DNA of 60,769 nt, the filler included, from Platydemus manokwari (lineage: Eukaryota), in NCBI GenBank assembly GCA_037951405.1. It is 6 parts of 6 records of this genome, joined end to end, with 100 filler letters (N's around TTAATTAATTAA, not from the genome) between each part and the next. Parts side by side here need not be neighbours in the genome. Positions count along the whole stretch, not along the records: positions 29,448 to 40,829 come from JBBMOY010715539.1; 5 more parts are not named here. One strand, 5' to 3'. The position numbers and the translations under genes are program-made. The notes under the pieces are model-generated. The model was given only the letters and a program-made list of their open reading frames with translations. It made no database searches and was not told the DNA's origin. Positions 29,448-39,908 of the stretch are shown in pieces (positions within the stretch are counted from its first letter, which is position 1; every line of letters starts with the position of its first letter).

Positions 29448-29563
29448 TTCTATGGCGCATATTTTATAAGGCTAATACATATGGGAATCCTAACTGGGTT
29501 ATATAGCAAAAGGAATTTTTACAACATATTTTTACAATTTGGTTTTGATTTTGATTAACTTAC

Positions 29564-29737
29564 AATTTATATTTTTGGAATGTTTGTACAATTTTTTGGT
29601 TATATTTTGAAATGCGAACTAAATGGGAATTTATATTTTTGGGATGTTTGTACAACTTTTTGGTTATATTTCGAGATGCAAACTAAATGGAGATTATGTG
29701 CTAGGTGGGTTAAATGGGGATTATGTGCTAGGTGGGG
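29564..29737. repeat. Adjacent tandem duplications (2x64 bp and 2x27 bp)
   Basis: 29564-29627 vs 29628-29691; TAAATGGRGATTATGTGCTAGGTGGG at 29684 and 29711. Confidence 0.9.
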
Positions 29738-29746
29738 ATCCCAACA

Positions 29747-30700
29747 CTACTTTGGGGTTTGAAAAGCCTCGTCCTCGTGGCTCTGGAACAGCTTACGGGG
29801 CTTGCCACGGACTTCTGCTTTTTTGTTATTTATCTTAAGGATGATGGGTGGAATGTGGGCCCATGGGATGCTGCTGTCTATGTCTACATCTGGGATGGCA
29901 TCCCATATCTCCATCGACGGCGTTTCCTTTTCTTCTGGTGATGGCGGCGGTGTCCCCATTTCCAGCTTTATCTCGAAGTCCTCTTCCTCATCTATTTCCA
30001 GGACTTCATCTGCGTCTACTTCCGGGGCTTCCTCCTTGTTTATCTCTAGGGCTTCATCCTCTTCTTCCTCCGGAGCTTCCTTTTCTTCCTTATCTGCTAG
30101 CCACTCTTTATAGCTTTTTATCGTGGCATCTATTTCCTGTGTTTCTTTATGTATTCTTCTCATTTCCTTCTGATCTTGTTTTAACTCCTTCATTTTTCCT
30201 TGTAGGGCATCCATAAGGTCCCACTTGTTCGTTATTTCCTTTGCCTTTTCCTCAAACTTTTCCATTCTTGCCTTCATCTCTTCTAACTTTTTCTGCATCT
30301 CCTTCTTTTCGTCCTTTGCCCTTTTTTCCCACTCAGATTCCTCTTCTTCTCTCTGCATTGCTTCTTCATACTCACAACTCCATCTTAGCAGCTCCTCCAA
30401 CTCTTCCTCCTCATTCCAACTACTAATATCGACATCCATGTCCTCTATTCCCAGGTCCATGTCCACCGTTTGCTCTACCAGCATCTGTTCCATTCCGCTA
30501 TGACTTGTTCCTGGCTCATCTTCTTCTCTGGGTTTCTTTCTTGGGCATTTCTCTATGGGGAACTGTTCTTCCCCCAAATGCTGTCGTATCATATGTTCGT
30601 ACGACCTCTTTGCCGCCATTGATTCCTTATCCCTCACTTCTTCATCCAATGGAATCAATCTCCAAGCTCGTTGCGGCGGCTCCCGCTCTTTTATTATCAT
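29747..30700 (-). CDS. Unknown acidic coiled-coil protein, 317 aa, intronless; probably viral or TE origin
   Basis: Long intact ORF, GC-richer than its flanks, E/K-rich heptads, internal 16-aa repeat (EAPEEEEDEALEI / EAPEVDADEVLEI). Confidence 0.65.
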   Translation of the reverse strand: MIIKEREPPQRAWRLIPLDEEVRDKESMAAKRSYEHMIRQHLGEEQFPIEKCPRKKPREEDEPGTSHSGMEQMLVEQTVDMDLGIEDMDVDISSWNEEEELEELLRWSCEYEEAMQREEEESEWEKRAKDEKKEMQKKLEEMKARMEKFEEKAKEITNKWDLMDALQGKMKELKQDQKEMRRIHKETQEIDATIKSYKEWLADKEEKEAPEEEEDEALEINKEEAPEVDADEVLEIDEEEDFEIKLEMGTPPPSPEEKETPSMEIWDAIPDVDIDSSIPWAHIPPIILKINNKKAEVRGKPRKLFQSHEDEAFQTPK

Positions 30701-31075
30701 TCATGGTTTGATGGGTGCGGGATCTACCCATTCTAAAACCTCTTTTGTCTTTTCCGTTTCTTCCTCTTCGTATCTCCGGACCTTCTCTTTCCAGCGGTTG
30801 TCCTGATTATCATCTTCATGGTCCTTCCATTCCTTTTCAACCGCTTTATATACTGCCTGGACTCCTGCTATTATGTCCAGCAGTTCCCCCTGTCTCATCC
30901 TCCGTCCTAAGATCCGATGATAAATATCTTGCAACCGATATGTTGTTGCAATCCTCTGCCGATGTCCCTCTCTCTGCATCCGGTCTTCATCAGCTGCTTT
31001 TTGATTAATTATTGGTGATCCATCCAAGTCTCGGATGCCAAGCACCTCTTCCAATCTTACTCCTATGGCCGTCAT
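30701..31075 (-). CDS. Unknown 124-aa protein directly upstream of the 317-aa ORF
   Basis: Intact ORF; its TGA abuts the next ATG (TGAATG); same elevated GC. Confidence 0.6.
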   Translation of the reverse strand: MTAIGVRLEEVLGIRDLDGSPIINQKAADEDRMQREGHRQRIATTYRLQDIYHRILGRRMRQGELLDIIAGVQAVYKAVEKEWKDHEDDNQDNRWKEKVRRYEEEETEKTKEVLEWVDPAPIKP

Positions 31076-31252
31076 TTTAATTCATTTATTAACATTATTT
31101 ATTGATTTTGAATCCATTTATCAATATCGTTTAATGATTTTGAATCAATTTATTAATATAATTTATTGATTTTGAATCCATTTATTAATATTATTTATTG
31201 ATTTTGAATTCATTTATTAACATTATTTATTGATTTTGAATTCATTTATTCA
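31075..31252. repeat. 32-bp AT-rich minisatellite, about 5.5 copies
   Basis: Unit TTTTGAATYCATTTATTAAYATTATTTATTGA at 31106, 31138, 31170, 31202 and 31234, plus a first copy overlapping the ATG. Confidence 0.92.
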
Positions 31253-32489
31253 TTTTTTAAATCAGGTTAATTTTTATTTATAAATTTATCGGTTTTACTT
31301 TTTAGTCATAACTTATCTAGTTCGACAGTTTTTCTATCACTTCAATAACGCTGATTACATAAACCTATGTTATCACAGAATTTCATATATTAATCTTTAT
31401 TATCAACATCAGGTCTAATTTTATTTGGATTCATTTTTGTTTTATTATTTTTTGTCTTTTCATCAGTCTCCGTGTGATATTGAGGCATATACAGGATATG
31501 GCTTTAAAAATTGATTATCACCAACTACTAATTTATTATAATCTTTCAGTGAGCGATCATTGAATTCGTTGCACTTTTATGATTTTCTTACGTTTATAAT
31601 TTTATATTATTTCCATATCAGTTTTGTATATTTTCAAAAACTCAATCCCTTGTCACGTTGCAAAATTTAAGTGAAATATTTTAATTGATTTTCTGTATAA
31701 TTTTTCATTTTTCTTTAAAGTAGTTCTTGATCACTCACTATACAGTAAAGTCCCATGATATAATATTGATTAAATGAGAAGATTAAAATCGCAATTATCT
31801 TCAAGATAAATATTTAGCCACCAACGCACCTGACTACTAATGTCATGATAGTTAGCTTTAAGATTTACTCGAGGCTCCATAATTTCACCTGTATATTATT
31901 TCAGTTAAACATCAATAGTTTTTGACATCATACGAGATTATCAAAGCCTTTTCAAAACCAACACACAGAATCAGGTTAACAACCAGCTCAGTCTAAAATT
32001 GATAAACCCTAGATAATGAGTTGTGCTCATTATCTCATATTTAATTTAAAACTGACACGCTGAAACTAAAAGATATAAAATTAAAAATATAAATATACAA
32101 CCTGTTTATATAAAATATACAACAAGAATATAAAGCATGAATATAATTACATAAAATATAAATATAATTAAAAAAAACGATAATAAATATAATAATAAAA
32201 ATTATAAATAAATATTGATTGAAAGTAAAGGAAAAATAAATAGTAATATTTTAGTAAAAATTAGAAAAAATATTAATTTATTATAATAAATTATAGTAGT
32301 TATGGTAGTTATGACAACGCGACATGTGTTTGATATTGAATTTGTAATAATTTTGGTAACGTGTTAAAAACATTCCATTTGCCTTTAAGATTCTCAGACT
32401 TTGGTTTTTGAATTGGAAACAGAAATGTTATACAGAACTCTTTTAATAGTTCATTTTCTCGAATGTAGAAAAGGTAGTGCAAGCCGCTA

Positions 32490-32645
32490 CTGTTTTATAA
32501 AACATGCCTTAAAAACGAGTTGCTCAGTCACGACACTAAATTATCAATTGAAAAAACATCATTTAAACAAATTTATGTCTTTCAATGTTAATTTAAACAA
32601 ATAATTTTAAATTTAAATTGTTAAATCCCCACAGGGAGAAAACAT
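32490..32645 (+). repeat. Dispersed repeat, related to 45195-45345
   Basis: Shared blocks TTTTATAAAACA, AAAACGA, GTCACGACACYAAATTAT and AAATYCYCACAG on two different contigs. Confidence 0.55.
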
Positions 32646-33900
32646 GACTTTTCATTCCTATTCCAATCACAAATCTTAATAGGATTTGGTAAATTTCAAT
32701 TTATTTTAATTCGTAATCGACCAAATAAACTCTTCACATCTAATAATATCATTTGTTTTCACAAAATATTTGTTTGAAAATCCAACCGTTTGCTTATGAT
32801 GTTAAAATCAAGGTCATTGAAATTTTCGAATAAATTGCAATTTGACCACTATCTCCAATAATCGATTTTTAAGAGGTTTTAAAGCTGTAGACTATTTGGC
32901 TTGAGTTAAGAAAATAGGTCTTTGACCTACTTTCGTAATAATGAGAGATAATTTTATAATTTAAGTTTACTCATACTCGTGATGTTTGATTTATTTGTAT
33001 AATTTAGTTAATATCTCACCATTTAGCATGTCCAATAAGGACAAAATATAGTTTTAATAACAAGTTCTCATTCTAATCAAAGCACCTCTTTACGATCATT
33101 TGAGTTTTCAAAAGTTAAATTTTTATAATTATAAATCGAGCTAGTTAATTAAAGGCATGTTTAATAATATCATTGTTTATTTTTATAAAATAATTCTAAA
33201 ACTAAAAATTGACAGCTTCCAATGTTAAAATAAATGGTTCTCGCTGATTTTCAAAAAATTGCAATACGACCTATTTTGATCCCTTTTTCAAATAATCAAA
33301 TTCTAGGACATTTTAAAGTTCTAGTTTATTTAATATTTGATTTCGAACAAATAAAATTTTTCTTAAGCGCTGAAATGAAAAATTCGACATGTTTTTAAAG
33401 AATATAATTAAATAAACTATATAGATTCTTGCAATACACTAAACTAATTTTAAAATTTACCTTAGGACATCTTCTTAACTTTAGCTGACTATTGGATGTC
33501 AAACAACTAAATTCATCTTAAATCAAAACTCGATGTGCTTTTAAAAAAGATTTGATTCGATTAATTTAAAGCTAAATATGAAGTCGGTGTAGACAAACCT
33601 GATATATTTTTAAATATCATTATATGTAAAGAATAGCAATAAAATACAGTATTTGCTAATTATGACATTAATCAGCTTCATTACTTAACAACGCATTACG
33701 GCTCTATGTCATTTAACTACGCACACACGTTGCAAGACAACTCCAGACAGAAAGCAGCATAAAAATCATTAAATTTATTAAAACATTGTATAAATATATT
33801 TCCAAAGGGTATTTCGACCAAACAAGCGAATAACATTAAGGATGGAAATCAAATCAAATCAAATTAATCGAGAATAAAATTCTCCAATATTATAAATTGA

Positions 33901-35840
33901 TCACGATTTCATATGATGAACTATAAACTTGTGCTCAAGTAATTCATTAACCGATGCTCTGACTTTAGAATTTCCTATCAAACACCTATCGATGAAATCT
34001 TTTAAATCTTTTGATCTGGTTTCGTGTAAGTCATAACTTATCTTTTCATATTTACCTATTTCAATCATTGCTTTCATTTCACTTTTACCATGGAAAGGTG
34101 AAAGGCCTGCAAATACAAATCGTTATACCGTTATGATATTAACAATAAATAAAATACCTGTAGCCATTTCTATTAATGTTGCCCCAAATGACCACACATC
34201 GGCTTGAATACCGTAAGGCTGGTTATTGCAGACCTCAGGAGCCATGTATCGATATGATCCAAGTTTTGATTGTTCAAACCCAGTTTGAAGAAATTTTTGA
34301 TCGCCACCATGAACATATTTAGCAACACCAAAGCTAGACAATTTGATATTTTCATTTCCATCCACCATAATGTTGGACGCTGTACAATATGAATAAATTT
34401 CATGAATATTTCTTTTATTTTACTTAAATATTACGTTTGACGTTTCTGTGAATGATTTTGTTCTTGTGAAGATGTTTTAGAGCTTCTAAGATTTGCTTTG
34501 CCCATTTTGCGATTGTATTTTCAGTTAAAAGTTTATCTTTATCCAAAAATTGCTTGATAGATCCCTACAAAGAATGGGTCAAATGATCACAATTACTGAT
34601 AACACATTTTAATTTACGTTCATCTTTTCCATGCCAATATAAAAATAGTCTTTGTCTTTAAAAACTCCTTTTAATTGGACAAACCTTGGATGTGATTTTG
34701 TTACTTGAAAGGTCACTATTTCGTTCAAAAACGCCTTGTTTTCTTTCAAATTTTTCATAGGTTCCAATGGGTATTTCTTTAAGATTATCTGTTCAGTTGT
34801 CCATGGATTTTGAACCTCTAAAATTTCGGAAATTTCGCCTGATTTAATGTTTTGACTTGAAATCTGTATGTTATTTATGCTAGAATAAAAAATGAGAAAT
34901 AATCTAATAATGTGTCATTGGTTACCTCATCAGACGGCAAAACGCCAGCTTAAAATCACTTTCGGTATCGATTTCAAAAATATATTCAGAATCTTTCAAA
35001 TTTCTTCTATTGTGGAACAGAATTAGATCATGAGCGTCTGATCCTAATTTGGCACCTAATTTCTGCTTGATTTGTAAAACGGATTCCATATTTAAATATT
35101 CAAATTCCATTGGTTCTACACCACCAAATATTGATTTAATTTTTACTTTTCCATTTTTCCTGAAAATTTAATTATGAAAATAAAATCAATAATCAGTTTA
35201 ATGCACTCTGCAATAATTTTCAGCCAATCATAATCTTCAAATGTTTTCAATTCTTTTGACTCATCCAACAATTCATCTGATTCTCGGAAAATGTGTGTTT
35301 TAGCATCGCTAACCAATCCGGAAATAATCAATCGTAAATCTGCAATTGATTGATTTTTGGTTATTTGAATCATTTCTGGAAGTCTGACATTTCCTCGCAA
35401 TTGTAATATAACAATGTCACTATTATCAACAAGATTTATCGATTATCTTTAATCAATATTCAATGAAACAAAACCTGGGATCCAAATTCTCATCCACTAT
35501 TCTGCAATGAACAACATTACGAGAAGAGGAAACATAATCGCACAAATATCGATTATCATCAAGATCTTTATCATCTAATTGCAATTTCATCAATTTGAAA
35601 TCGTATGAGTTAGAATTGAGCCATTTCGCGCAGATTTTCATTTTCACCTTTACTATATTATCGTCTTTATAGATTTCCAATTCTATCGACTTTTCCGAAA
35701 ATCCGATTCGAAATTCTATCAATAATCCATAAGGATCTAAACCAGATATGATTTTATTACTGACCAAACCAATTAATAAAATGAAGAGCAAAAGCTTATC
35801 TTGTACAACTGTCGTATTTTAACAATTTAAGCCATTCCAT
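33901..35840 (-). CDS. Three ubiquitin-like domains fused to an STE/MAP3K-like pseudokinase, at least 7 exons; start uncertain
   Basis: Splice phases are consistent from about 35736 to the TGA at 33901. Kinase subdomains: IILKK, FLNE, HPRFV, HRNVKPSNIM, KLSSFG, YMAPE, ADVWSFG, RASVNELLEHKF. Three upstream exons of about 75-85 aa show a UBL-like pattern (e.g. SVLQIKQKL..LILFHNRRNLKD). Confidence 0.85.
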
Positions 35841-38800
35841 ACCAACACAACCATACAGGCATGGCAATCAACCAATCACAGATGACTTAGATAGGAAATG
35901 ATAATTTGAAAAGGCGACGAGCCATACAATAACACACAGATAAGGGTTGACCAATCCCGAGATTACAAAAACCAACAGGTCCAATAGAAACATTAGAAAT
36001 GAAATGACAAATCAAAATTTGATAAGAACGTGATACAAAAATTGCACCCATGGTCTCGAGTATAAATAACCAATGTAAAGATGGTCAAGTTTTGGTTGCG
36101 TTTATGAGATATTGTATTGAGTTTTAGAGAATCGTACCGATTAGTACGTTTGACGATATAGATCTTGGAACTTTCTATTTTCGGTGTCTGCAGTTATTTG
36201 GTTATCGAGAATTTAGTACCAGCGGTTGTGTCGAATGATTGATTATATATACAGCATGTTAAGGTTCGATAATAACCCTGATCTTAAAGATGCTTCAGGC
36301 CACCAAATCGTGTTATTTAAAGAAGAAATTCATGCTTTTGAATTGATAGAGATAACCGGAAATTATAAATATCAAAATCATTAAAAACAATAATCGATCT
36401 AAATATATATATATTGCATCACAGTGCGTGTTGATAACTAATTGATGACAATAAAACCGAACCCAAGACTTGGTCGCTTAAGGAAATTAGGACAATATAT
36501 ATATAGAATTATAATAATGTACCTTTTCAGATTTTTTAATAAATCTATATCATGGAATTGATTTAATAATATGAAAATAAAACTTAAAGTTAAAAATTTT
36601 CACTAACATGAATTATTCGGCGGAAGAATAGGCCTATTCATTGTGTCATTTCCATCTATAGAAGAAAAGAAAAGTTTATTGATTATGCATATATCCGCAA
36701 ATATTGATTATCATTAAACTAACCTATATTCAACTTATTGCAAATGTTGTCAACCTTACAATCTAAATCAGTGTCAAAGATATATCGATAATAAAATAGA
36801 ATAACTTATTTCTACAAGTAATTTATCCAACAGCACATGATCTATGATTTTGTGATCTATAATAATAATAATCGATAAATACTGAAATATTTATTGATTT
36901 GGAATGATGATAATGAGAAAAACAAACCACATAATCACCGTTTAATATATAAGCATGTGATATATTGTTCCTAAGCTATTAGAATTATTTATTTCGTCAA
37001 ATATTTTCCGATAATCAATATCAAATTGTCAATAAATATTTTTAAATTCACTGATCTAAATCGATTTGAAGTGTTAAAAAATCATGTTATGAATCATTTT
37101 GAAAATGATTCACGTAAACGATTGTGAATCATGTAGACAAAATAGGTGATATTTTAGTATTAAAACCAATACCACAAATATAAAGGAATAATGTCATGGC
37201 AGGAAAATATTGAAATGGTTCGAGAAATTATCAACATCATCCAATAAAACAGGTAGATAAAATCGATGAATAAGAACGGTGTCATGAAGTACAATTCAAA
37301 TGACATTCAAAATGAAAAATAATGCCATGTTTACTGACTGATTAATATACACGATCAATATATACGATAAATGATGAATTAAGTAAGAAAGAAGATAGAT
37401 ATAATCAAGTCATTTCAAATGTCTTTTAGTTTGATTCTAAAGATTTAGAATCCATTCATTGATCTCTAAGATCGATTCTATGAAATAATCAATGACAAAC
37501 AAATTACACTTATCGATTATTTATCTTTAATCATAATATTAAAATAAACAGGTGAAATACTTTCATATTGGAGTAGATCGACGTTCTCATAATCTTGATT
37601 ATTTTCTGAATGAAACAAGAATTAAAAAAATATCGATTATAAAAAATCAATTGTGTGTAATATATGGTAACTGCTCATAAAAACGGAAATGAAATCACAG
37701 ATTTTAAATGGAGGGAAATGGTAAATTTGAGTACAAAAACTGAACAGATTTTATAGGCAACAAATCTTATTTGTTGTATTTTTGTAAATCTGAATTGCAC
37801 ATTGCAAAATCAAAGGATCAAGTAGAAGAAACTTACAATATATGGATGAATATAAAGCGAAAAATTATCGATTGAATTGTTTAATCTAAAAAAATATGAA
37901 AATATTGTCAAATAATTTTATTAAAATTTAAGTTTTTTCATTACAAGATAAATGAAGGTAAATCAATAAAATATCTCGATTGATTTCAGAAAATCGATCG
38001 AAGAAGACATAAATGAGAATTTTGAATAAAACATTGAGTATTAATTAAATCTTTATTTTCAAATCAATACAGGCTCGGGTGAATTCAGAATTGATTTTCC
38101 AAGCTCGACAATGAGGTATTATGTTTTTATCATCACAACTTATTGTTATTAATGGAAGGCATGGAAAGCATTCCTTGATTTCACATATTTCTGTAATTTC
38201 GAACATCTATGATTTTATTGAGATTTCAACACACATAAATTCGTACGACGGCAATTTCTCCAGCATTGAGATTCTTGTGACCCTTACTTACAGACGAATA
38301 TCAGCTGATAGACAGGTCTTATGATATGGATATGCCTTCTGCACCTTTCCCCATTGTGTGCTGATTTTATTCATAAATTCCGATAAACATTATTAAAGAT
38401 ATTTTTAATTCACTTCTTATTGATCTATTTTTGAAAAAATATTTTTCATATGAACTGAGTTCGATAAAAATTGCTGATCATCTAACAAATTGTATCTCGA
38501 ATATTAATTTGAAATACTCCAGTTCAAGAAACGCAATTCTAATAATCAACTTCTTGTTTACACAAATCAAAGAGGTCGGTCTGATCGGTATAATCTTTTC
38601 CTGATTCAAGGGAACTGATCACAGTATTCCTAGGAAACTAGAAATTGAACAAAGAAGATCAAAGGTATTACAGAATCAGCAAAGGCCAACAGTTCCATTT
38701 CAAGTTCAATGCTTATACCAGCACCAAATCTGATCGGATGCCGCATGTGAACCGCTCTTGACTGACCATAGCAGAAAAGTGAAGAAATAATGAGTAAACA

Positions 38801-39198
38801 AGAGCCGCATTATCATTACCAGTGATGTCTGCACCAATATTCAGGTAAGATCAATTTCAGGTATCCATTTTATTGAATTAAAAGTAATTTTTATATTATT
38901 GTCCTTCAGAAGGAGAAATTTAATTCACATTTATCGGGAAGAAATGGGTATTCTCATGATATTGCTAGGATAAATAGAGCCAATAATAGAAATGAGTAAC
39001 AAGAAGAGTGAATGTCGGATACACATCCATATAAGGAGTAAGTTCTGCCCCAATAGGTACTTGTCCTTTAGAAGTTATCTCAGAATGGTTTCGTCAGCTC
39101 TTAGTTTAAAAACTCTCAGGAATAATGATATTTCGGGCCTAACAAGCTGTTTTATAGAGAACAGAATCATATAAAATTATCTATGGATACAAACTTAC

Positions 39199-39228
39199 GT
39201 GACCCAGTGGCCCGACCCTTGCGTTTGC
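39199..39228 (-). other. Candidate 30-nt micro-exon
   Basis: TTTTTTTAG|GCAAACGCAAGGGTCGGGCCACTGGGTCAC|GTAAGT: GC-rich with consensus splice sites. Confidence 0.5.
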
Positions 39229-39861
39229 CTAAAAAAATAATCATGGCTTGATAAAATTTTAACAAAACATATATAAAATTCTAAATAAAAATAAAAGCTC
39301 AAGGCATTACGGGATAGATTTATTGGTTACCAGATCGAAATATTATTGGAAAATATATTGATGTATTGAATAATATTGTGAATATAAAACCAGCATATTA
39401 TTTTATTTAAAGATTTCTCTTTACAATGGATATCTTAATGAAAATCATATTTCTGGATATTCCCAGCAATTATATTATCACTTGATTGATGACATAATCT
39501 CATTTTTAAAAATTACATCATCAAAATTTATTATTATCATCGTGCAATTCATTGTTATAGATGGGACTCACACGTTTATCACACCTACACCCACCCAAAC
39601 CCCCACACCAACACATATATATATATATAAAACAATTCAATAAATCAAATCAAATAACAATGCAATTAACGAACATTTAAAAATCCTCCTAAAGGATTGC
39701 CATATGATTTCAATAAACAAGAAAATCAGCAGCAACAGCACCAAAAGAACTAAAATGATATCAATGATATCTCACATAAGATTGAATAGATAATACAATC
39801 TCACATAAACAGATCATCACTTTGAAATCTCGATCTGAAATACAATCATAGCAATAAGATA

Positions 39862-39908
39862 TTGATTATTATTATTATTATTATTATTGTTATTATTATT
39901 ATTATTAT
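39862..39908. repeat. (ATT)n microsatellite
   Basis: Seen directly; similar tracts at about 14572-14600, 40788-40812 and 41662-41705. Confidence 0.85.

Follow-up and report, generated by a model that had tools for sequence, protein, structure and literature searches.

The window considered here is a 60,769-nucleotide (nt) stretch of DNA from Platydemus manokwari (GenBank assembly GCA_037951405.1), in which six parts of six records are joined end to end with filler between them. We analysed one of these parts, the 11.4-kb piece at 29448-40829 (JBBMOY010715539.1), and in particular a gene on its minus strand that places three ubiquitin-like (UBL) domains ahead of a kinase domain in which both catalytic aspartates have been replaced. 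Judged from its sequence, this gene is intact, with a coding frame that spans about 519 codons and a putative start exon, and its family is small and lineage-restricted. Its features, with positions counted along the whole window and with the basis of each assignment, are listed below; P0031 and L001 are a predicted protein and an assembled contig that carry relatives of the gene.

35810-35840, minus strand: proposed first coding exon, putative, with an ATG at 35840, a donor GT at 35809 or 35806, and phase 1 into exon 1.
35475-35736, minus strand: exon 1, ubiquitin-like domain 1 (UBL1), from Pfam, PDB sequence matches and P0031.
35207-35419, minus strand: exon 2, ubiquitin-like domain 2 (UBL2), from homology to P0031, AlphaFold2 and Foldseek.
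34926-35159, minus strand: exon 3, ubiquitin-like domain 3 (UBL3), from Pfam, PDB sequence matches and L001.
34618-34879, minus strand: exon 4, kinase N-lobe with the Gly loop KSGEISEI, the beta3 Lys and the alphaC Glu, from Pfam Pkinase.
34435-34564, minus strand: exon 5, hinge to catalytic loop, with HRN at 34450-34442, from Pfam Pkinase.
34158-34379, minus strand: exon 6, activation segment with SFG at 34335-34327, APE and DVWSFG, from Pfam Pkinase.
33901-34106, minus strand: exon 7, end of the kinase C-lobe, with the stop codon TGA at 33903-33901, from Pfam Pkinase.
33774-33779, minus strand: probable polyadenylation signal (AATAAA), 122 nt past the stop, from a pattern scan and a match to the consensus only.

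The seven exons between 35736 and 33901 are bounded by AG acceptors and GT donors throughout, and the introns that separate exon 1 from exon 7 are 46-55 nt long. With its AT-rich sequence and introns of about 50 nt, the genome has a flatworm-like character. When the proposed first exon is added (ATG at 35840, donor at 35809, 73-nt intron), the joined frame comprises 519 codons and a stop, with no internal stop by local count, in DNA of approximately 70% A+T where chance stop codons would be frequent. This joined frame served for the local count of codons and stops and for residues at the junctions; searches and folding used single exons. All three of the N-terminal junctions (exons 1-2, 2-3 and 3-4) are in phase 2, as a preliminary description of the locus had reported, while the junction of exons 4 and 5 is in phase 0 and those of exons 5-6 and 6-7 are in phase 1. 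Exon 1 itself offers no in-frame ATG upstream of the mid-point of UBL1. Upstream of this exon, a high-copy short repeat occupies 35816-35887, and the proposed start ATG sits on its edge; in X1, the only sequencing run found to hold this sequence, the summed contig depth over the repeat is about 3659, versus about 40 in adjacent bins (a roughly 90-fold excess), and many X1 contigs diverge on either side of the repeat core at about 35845-35880.

Exons 4-7 encode a kinase fold. Matches to the Pfam Pkinase profile (PF00069) run colinearly over the four exons, covering profile positions 5-81, 83-125, 127-192 and 212-263 of 263, and three of the four pass the cut-off of 31.7 bits singly. The E-values are 4.6e-8 for exon 4 and 1e-16 for exon 6. 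Within this fold, the Asp of HRD is replaced by Asn (HRN at 34450-34442, in a loop, HRNVKPSN, that spans the junction of exons 5 and 6), the Asp of DFG is replaced by Ser (SFG at 34335-34327), and the Gly loop reads KSGEISEI, keeping only the central Gly of GxGxxG and losing the other two of its three glycines. The beta3 Lys (IILKKY) and the alphaC Glu (FLNEI), both assigned from alignment and position, are kept, as are the catalytic-loop Asn, APE (YMAPE) and DVWSFG with the alphaF Asp. The preliminary description had reported these substitutions and the retained beta3 Lys, alphaC Glu, APE and DVWS, and HRN and SFG lie exactly at the coordinates that it gave. If a pseudokinase is defined operationally as a kinase fold lacking at least one of the VAIK Lys, the HRD Asp and the DFG Asp, then this gene has lost two of the three, and both losses are shared with its relative L001; its earlier designation as a pseudokinase thus agrees with the loss of both aspartates and of two of the three Gly-loop glycines. 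On these motifs, the kinase fold is predicted to be unable to catalyse canonical phosphotransfer.

The N-terminal part of the protein consists of three domains, each encoded by one exon, that had been proposed to be ubiquitin-like, and this proposal is supported for all three, for exons 1 and 3 by Pfam and PDB matches and for exon 2 by homology to P0031 together with structure prediction. Exon 1 matches Pfam ubiquitin (PF00240) with an E-value of 4e-5 and 23.7 bits, slightly under the cut-off of 25.4; its PDB sequence matches are ubiquitin chains nearly throughout, its atlas feature matches include ubiquitin and Rad60-SLD clusters, and it is 34% identical to residues 8-63 of P0031 (E 6e-8). 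Exon 3 likewise scores under the same cut-off (E 4.4e-4, 20.4 bits), each of its six PDB matches is to ubiquitin, a ubiquitin variant or a ubiquitin-like protein, and it shares 36% identity over 75 residues with the corresponding exon of L001.

Exon 2 has no Pfam match and no PDB sequence match, and a four-sequence profile built from it (A2) found no ubiquitin match among PDB sequences. It is 34% identical to residues 83-135 of P0031 (E 1e-8), a region that itself has weak matches to Pfam ubiquitin (E 0.0086) and to Rad60-SLD. Among its language-model neighbours the only named clusters are ubiquitin and Rad60-SLD, with scores below 0.9, which we treat as a lead only. When AlphaFold2 was given a nine-sequence alignment (A5), it returned a beta-beta-alpha-beta-beta topology with a predicted local distance difference test (pLDDT) score of 81.2 and a predicted template-modelling score (pTM) of 0.65. 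A Foldseek comparison of this model with the PDB yielded nearly all ubiquitin-like folds among the top 50 (query-based template-modelling score, TMq, of 0.66-0.83; probability 1.00), including FAT10, ISG15, ubiquitin, elongin B and SUMO, with 7pyv_C and 6yva_C at TMq 0.77-0.82. In this predicted structure, exon 2 folds as a ubiquitin-like beta-grasp; it is the only one of the three exons for which the fold was modelled. None of the three modules ends in the C-terminal Gly-Gly of a conjugatable modifier (their ends are ...DENLDPS, ...KIIAE and ...CRLMS, each running into the next domain), and the UBLs are thus best viewed as built-in domains rather than as modifiers that could be conjugated.

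The same combination of domains occurs in other predicted proteins. P0031, P0139 and P0077 are unnamed, paralogue-like UniParc entries with accessions of the form UPI0006.... The first of these, P0031 (416 aa), has the order UBL1-UBL2-UBL3-kinase, colinear with exons 1, 2 and 3, and taken as a whole it scores above the threshold for Pfam ubiquitin (29.4 bits, in two stretches). Its DFG position reads AFS and its Gly loop LGNYSEIL, and its model seems to skip the part from alphaC to HRD. P0139 consists of UBL1-UBL2 and a kinase C-lobe in which DFG is retained, and its UBL1 passes the ubiquitin cut-off at 27.3 bits. P0077 carries YRN, GFG and the Gly loop RGISSEIL, and P0004 has SFS at the DFG position. 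Across paralogues and fragments, the DFG position varies among SFG, SFS, AFS, GFG, SVS, GFD and NFH. A replacement Gly-loop motif, xGxxS[ED]I[LF], extends across the family, as does the conserved beta3 strand I[ILV]K[KR]Y, and the beta3 Lys and alphaC Glu are conserved in L001, P0077 and P0031. The earlier view that the UBL and kinase exons form one gene, with splicing predicted from sequence, is supported by the same domain order in P0031 and P0139 and by the colinearity of L001 with exons 2 to 7, with the same junctions.

A deeply diverged relative is found on L001, a Logan contig of 2246 nt from SRR33002330 that encodes P0002. Its predicted protein is 64% identical to exon 6, and identity is 55% in exon 4 and 47% in exon 7. 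L001 has a GC content of 45%, versus about 31% here, and so probably derives from another genome. It contains exons resembling exons 2 to 7 in the same order as the window gene, separated by GT..AG introns of about 47-64 nt whose positions and phases match at all five junctions covered (exons 2-3 to exons 6-7). Its motifs are IIHRNVK, SSFG and the Gly loop NRGDYSDI. Between the window gene and L001, nonsynonymous divergence (pN) is 0.29 and synonymous divergence (pS) is 0.92, which is saturated. Because the dead motifs have been kept in L001 despite saturated synonymous sites, we infer that the pseudokinase state is old and selected. The preliminary description had named the retention of HRD and DFG in orthologues as an observation that would speak against its reading; the nearest relative, L001, has HRN and SFG. 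A second family member among the Logan contigs of SRR33002330 (L002, 1285 nt) keeps HRD (IIHRDLK) and has SFS at the DFG position, indicating that the two aspartates were not lost simultaneously across the family.

An exhaustive HMMER search with exon 6 returned 4821 proteins at E <=0.001, mostly generic kinases or proteins with multiple kinase domains, among which a small number of close relatives with a single kinase domain stood out. The protein searches revealed no close orthologue from another phylum. Word-index searches with P0031 and P0077 each returned the query itself and generic kinases only, and an exact-sequence look-up of P0031 gave no record. One further candidate, P0064, was rejected as a family member, because it is an active kinase without introns that lies on metagenome contigs and is unrelated to the family. 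Among the top matches, P0001, P0005 and others have many kinase stretches in tandem (10 stretches in P0001, which is 2911 aa long) and lie on ENA metagenome contigs.

In regard to kinase group, the locus had been described as STE-like, and this is loosely supported. The nearest named kinases of P0031 are MAP3K2/3/22 (30-33% identity over a third of P0031), MAP3K4 and MAP2K7, while those of P0077 are STK24, PAK1 and GCN2; exon 6 matches EGFR, NEK2, RSK, MAP3K2/5, MEK1 and OSR1 among named kinases, and oomycete, Dictyostelium, algal and snail kinases also appear among matches outside the family. Members of STE11, STE7 and STE20 are thus among the nearest named kinases, but they are mixed with kinases of other groups. 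An STE-like placement of the family is plausible.

We consider it probable that the gene encodes a conserved, non-catalytic UBL-pseudokinase. Such a protein would have a non-catalytic role as adaptor or allosteric partner within STE-type signalling resembling a mitogen-activated protein kinase (MAPK) cascade. By analogy with STRAD and LKB1, and with KSR and MEK, its preserved kinase fold, including the Lys-Glu pair, the catalytic-loop Asn, APE and the alphaF Asp, may hold a partner kinase or a substrate. The three UBLs would function as protein-protein docking modules, in the way that PB1 serves MAP3K2/3 and the ubiquitin-like domain (ULD) serves TBK1/IKK. A more specific proposal, which we offer tentatively and regard as possible rather than probable, is that the UBL array presents the dead STE-type kinase to ubiquitin- or UBL-binding machinery or to a partner kinase; the family would then constitute a new type of adaptor, built on a pseudokinase and connecting MAPK-type signalling with recognition of the ubiquitin fold, lineage-restricted and with its inactive state fixed early.

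Several observations weigh against the reading as a conserved UBL-pseudokinase. Nineteen upstream pairs of ATG and GT fit the required phase, so that there are several candidates for the start codon. The single-sequence AlphaFold2 model of exon 2 is uninformative (pLDDT 51), and alignment A5 is made up of family UBL modules that include the types of exons 1 and 3, so the better exon 2 model is not fully independent of them. The second UBL of L001 (630-773) seems to lack about 15 residues relative to exon 2 (ESDKLQ-RIVAL versus ESDELLDESKELKTFEDYDWLKIIAE), which marks UBL2 as the least conserved module. In UBL1, the residue aligned to Ile44 of ubiquitin is Gln, and binding to classical ubiquitin receptors is therefore not implied. 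The contigs of run X1 cover the introns, so that this run behaves as DNA, and no splice joints for the gene were seen in them. Lower-depth X1 contigs are 90-95% identical to the gene across 33900-35760, and among their listed differences 25 are nonsynonymous and 6 synonymous; these variants include a stop at 35668 (codon 23 of exon 1), and intron 6 has lost 8 nt by deletion. One or more near-copies thus seem to exist that are decaying or evolving fast. Since variants with a stop indicate that some members of the family are decaying, the activity of the present copy is only predicted.

The X1 variants, with their excess of nonsynonymous differences and their single stop, would also fit an alternative in which the gene is a silent or decaying copy, that is, a recent duplicate of a functional member that is unexpressed and only looks intact. 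The ambiguity of the start codon, with the proposed ATG on the edge of a high-copy repeat, and a run search that gave no RNA run are compatible with this idea as well. However, 519 stop-free codons at about 70% A+T, seven GT..AG introns and kept intron phases would be very unlikely after appreciable neutral decay, and the structural kinase motifs and the core positions of the UBLs are all intact. We judge a silent copy to be unlikely.

Somewhat less likely again is that the protein is an atypical but active kinase, using unconventional catalysis or Mg-independent activity, with the conserved Lys-Glu pair and Asn reflecting nucleotide use. There are precedents for activity in kinases with unusual motifs: WNK kinases have compensating residues elsewhere in the fold, and Mg-independent activity has been reported for CASK. 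In favour of an active enzyme, the window gene shares with L001 and P0077 the Lys of beta3, the Glu of alphaC, the Asn of the catalytic loop, APE and the alphaF Asp, and conservation of the replacement Gly-loop motif shows that this loop has not decayed at random. Yet in the window gene both catalytic aspartates and two Gly-loop glycines are gone together, no compensating acidic residue was identified, and the free variation at the DFG position in paralogues speaks against a conserved role in metal binding. It is very unlikely that the model mistakenly joins UBL and kinase exons of two adjacent genes, or that the UBL-like exons are chance frames, because, even though splicing was inferred from sequence alone and exon 2 is without a sequence-level family match, the intron between exons 3 and 4 is only 46 nt long with matching phase and no stop or start between, UBLs and a kinase domain occur in one protein in each of the independent models P0031 and P0139, exons 2, 3 and 4 are colinear in L001 with the same phase-2 junctions, and exons 1 and 2 match UBL1 and UBL2 of P0031 at E-values of 6e-8 and 1e-8.

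The preliminary description suggested that the three UBLs arose by exon duplication. Exons 2 and 3 are symmetric phase 2-2 exons with one domain each, as exon shuffling would be expected to produce, and to this extent the suggestion is supported; it is not supported by sequence similarity among the modules, since profile-profile comparison of the three UBL positions (profiles A2, A3 and A4) was not significant, with hhalign probabilities of 0.1-3%. Every UBL is nearer to the UBL at the same position in P0031 than to its own neighbours. Thus, any triplication must be old, predating diversification of the family. Alternatively, the three UBLs may have been acquired independently.

Elsewhere in the 11.4-kb piece, no other tandem paralogues of the gene were found, and Rfam and tRNA scans of 29448-40829 gave no matches. 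A GC-rich block on the minus strand at 29750-31075 has 43-46% GC versus about 28% in its surroundings, and contains two abutting long open reading frames of 124 aa and 317 aa that are rich in Glu and Lys and have no Pfam match. Tandem repeats flank it at 29564-29736 and at 31074-31250 (a 32-nt unit in 5.6 copies). This block could represent a mobile or otherwise inserted element, or else a gene with no connection to the present one.

Several known systems share some of the properties of the gene. STRAD proteins are pseudokinases of the STE20 group with partners such as MO25 and LKB1. STRADalpha/beta resemble the window gene in having an STE-group-like fold that has lost catalytic residues, is conserved and has a presumed binding role, and STE20 kinases (STK24 and PAK1) are among the best matches of P0077 with solved structures; however, STRAD has no ubiquitin-like domains, and the likeness is drawn from general knowledge of STRAD and not from orthology. 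KSR1/2 are comparable in the proposed mode of action, in which an impaired kinase domain scaffolds a kinase of the MAPK cascade, but they belong to the TKL group (RAF family), have CA1-CA5 regions and no UBL array, and show no sequence relationship that we could find.

Other parallels concern the N-terminal modules. MAP3K2/3 (MEKK2/3) combine an N-terminal beta-grasp module (PB1, PF00564) with an STE11 kinase, and MAP3K22/3/2, each of which has PF00564, are among the best named matches of P0031. Unlike the window gene, with its three ubiquitin-scoring (PF00240) domains and dead kinase, MAP3K2/3 are active and have one PB1; a search for PB1 in exons 1-3 gave no match at E <=10. TBK1/IKK likewise carry a built-in, non-conjugatable UBL within the kinase chain for intramolecular or partner contacts, although there a single ULD lies C-terminal to an active kinase of another group, whereas here three UBLs lie N-terminal to a pseudokinase. 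FAT10 and ISG15, which the exon 2 model matches best in structure, are also head-to-tail UBL arrays, but they are free, conjugatable modifiers of two domains with a C-terminal Gly-Gly, in contrast to the kinase-fused UBLs of the window gene, which lack it. Two N-terminal ubiquitin-fold domains precede the kinase domain in DCLK1/2 and in the plant proteins PI4K-gamma4/7 (UBDK). DCLK differs in having DCX domains and an active CAMK kinase, and the plant PI4K-gamma proteins in having a PI3/4-kinase domain; neither family appears among the search matches.

Our search of the full-text literature found no description of a UBL-array pseudokinase family, and ubiquitin domains go unmentioned in a recent paper on the flatworm kinome. 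The family is apparently undescribed, with its members present in databases only as unnamed predictions. For genome annotation, the locus illustrates that genes with short introns such as these can be modelled reliably through comparative conservation of introns, even without RNA data. More broadly, pseudokinases are now understood to work by allosteric regulation and scaffolding, and every further combination of domains reveals another use of the dead kinase fold. If the gene is expressed, it would offer a compact and testable case in which there is one domain per exon and the parts are separable. It could then be used to ask what role built-in UBLs play in a pseudokinase, and which cascade of kinases they regulate in these animals.

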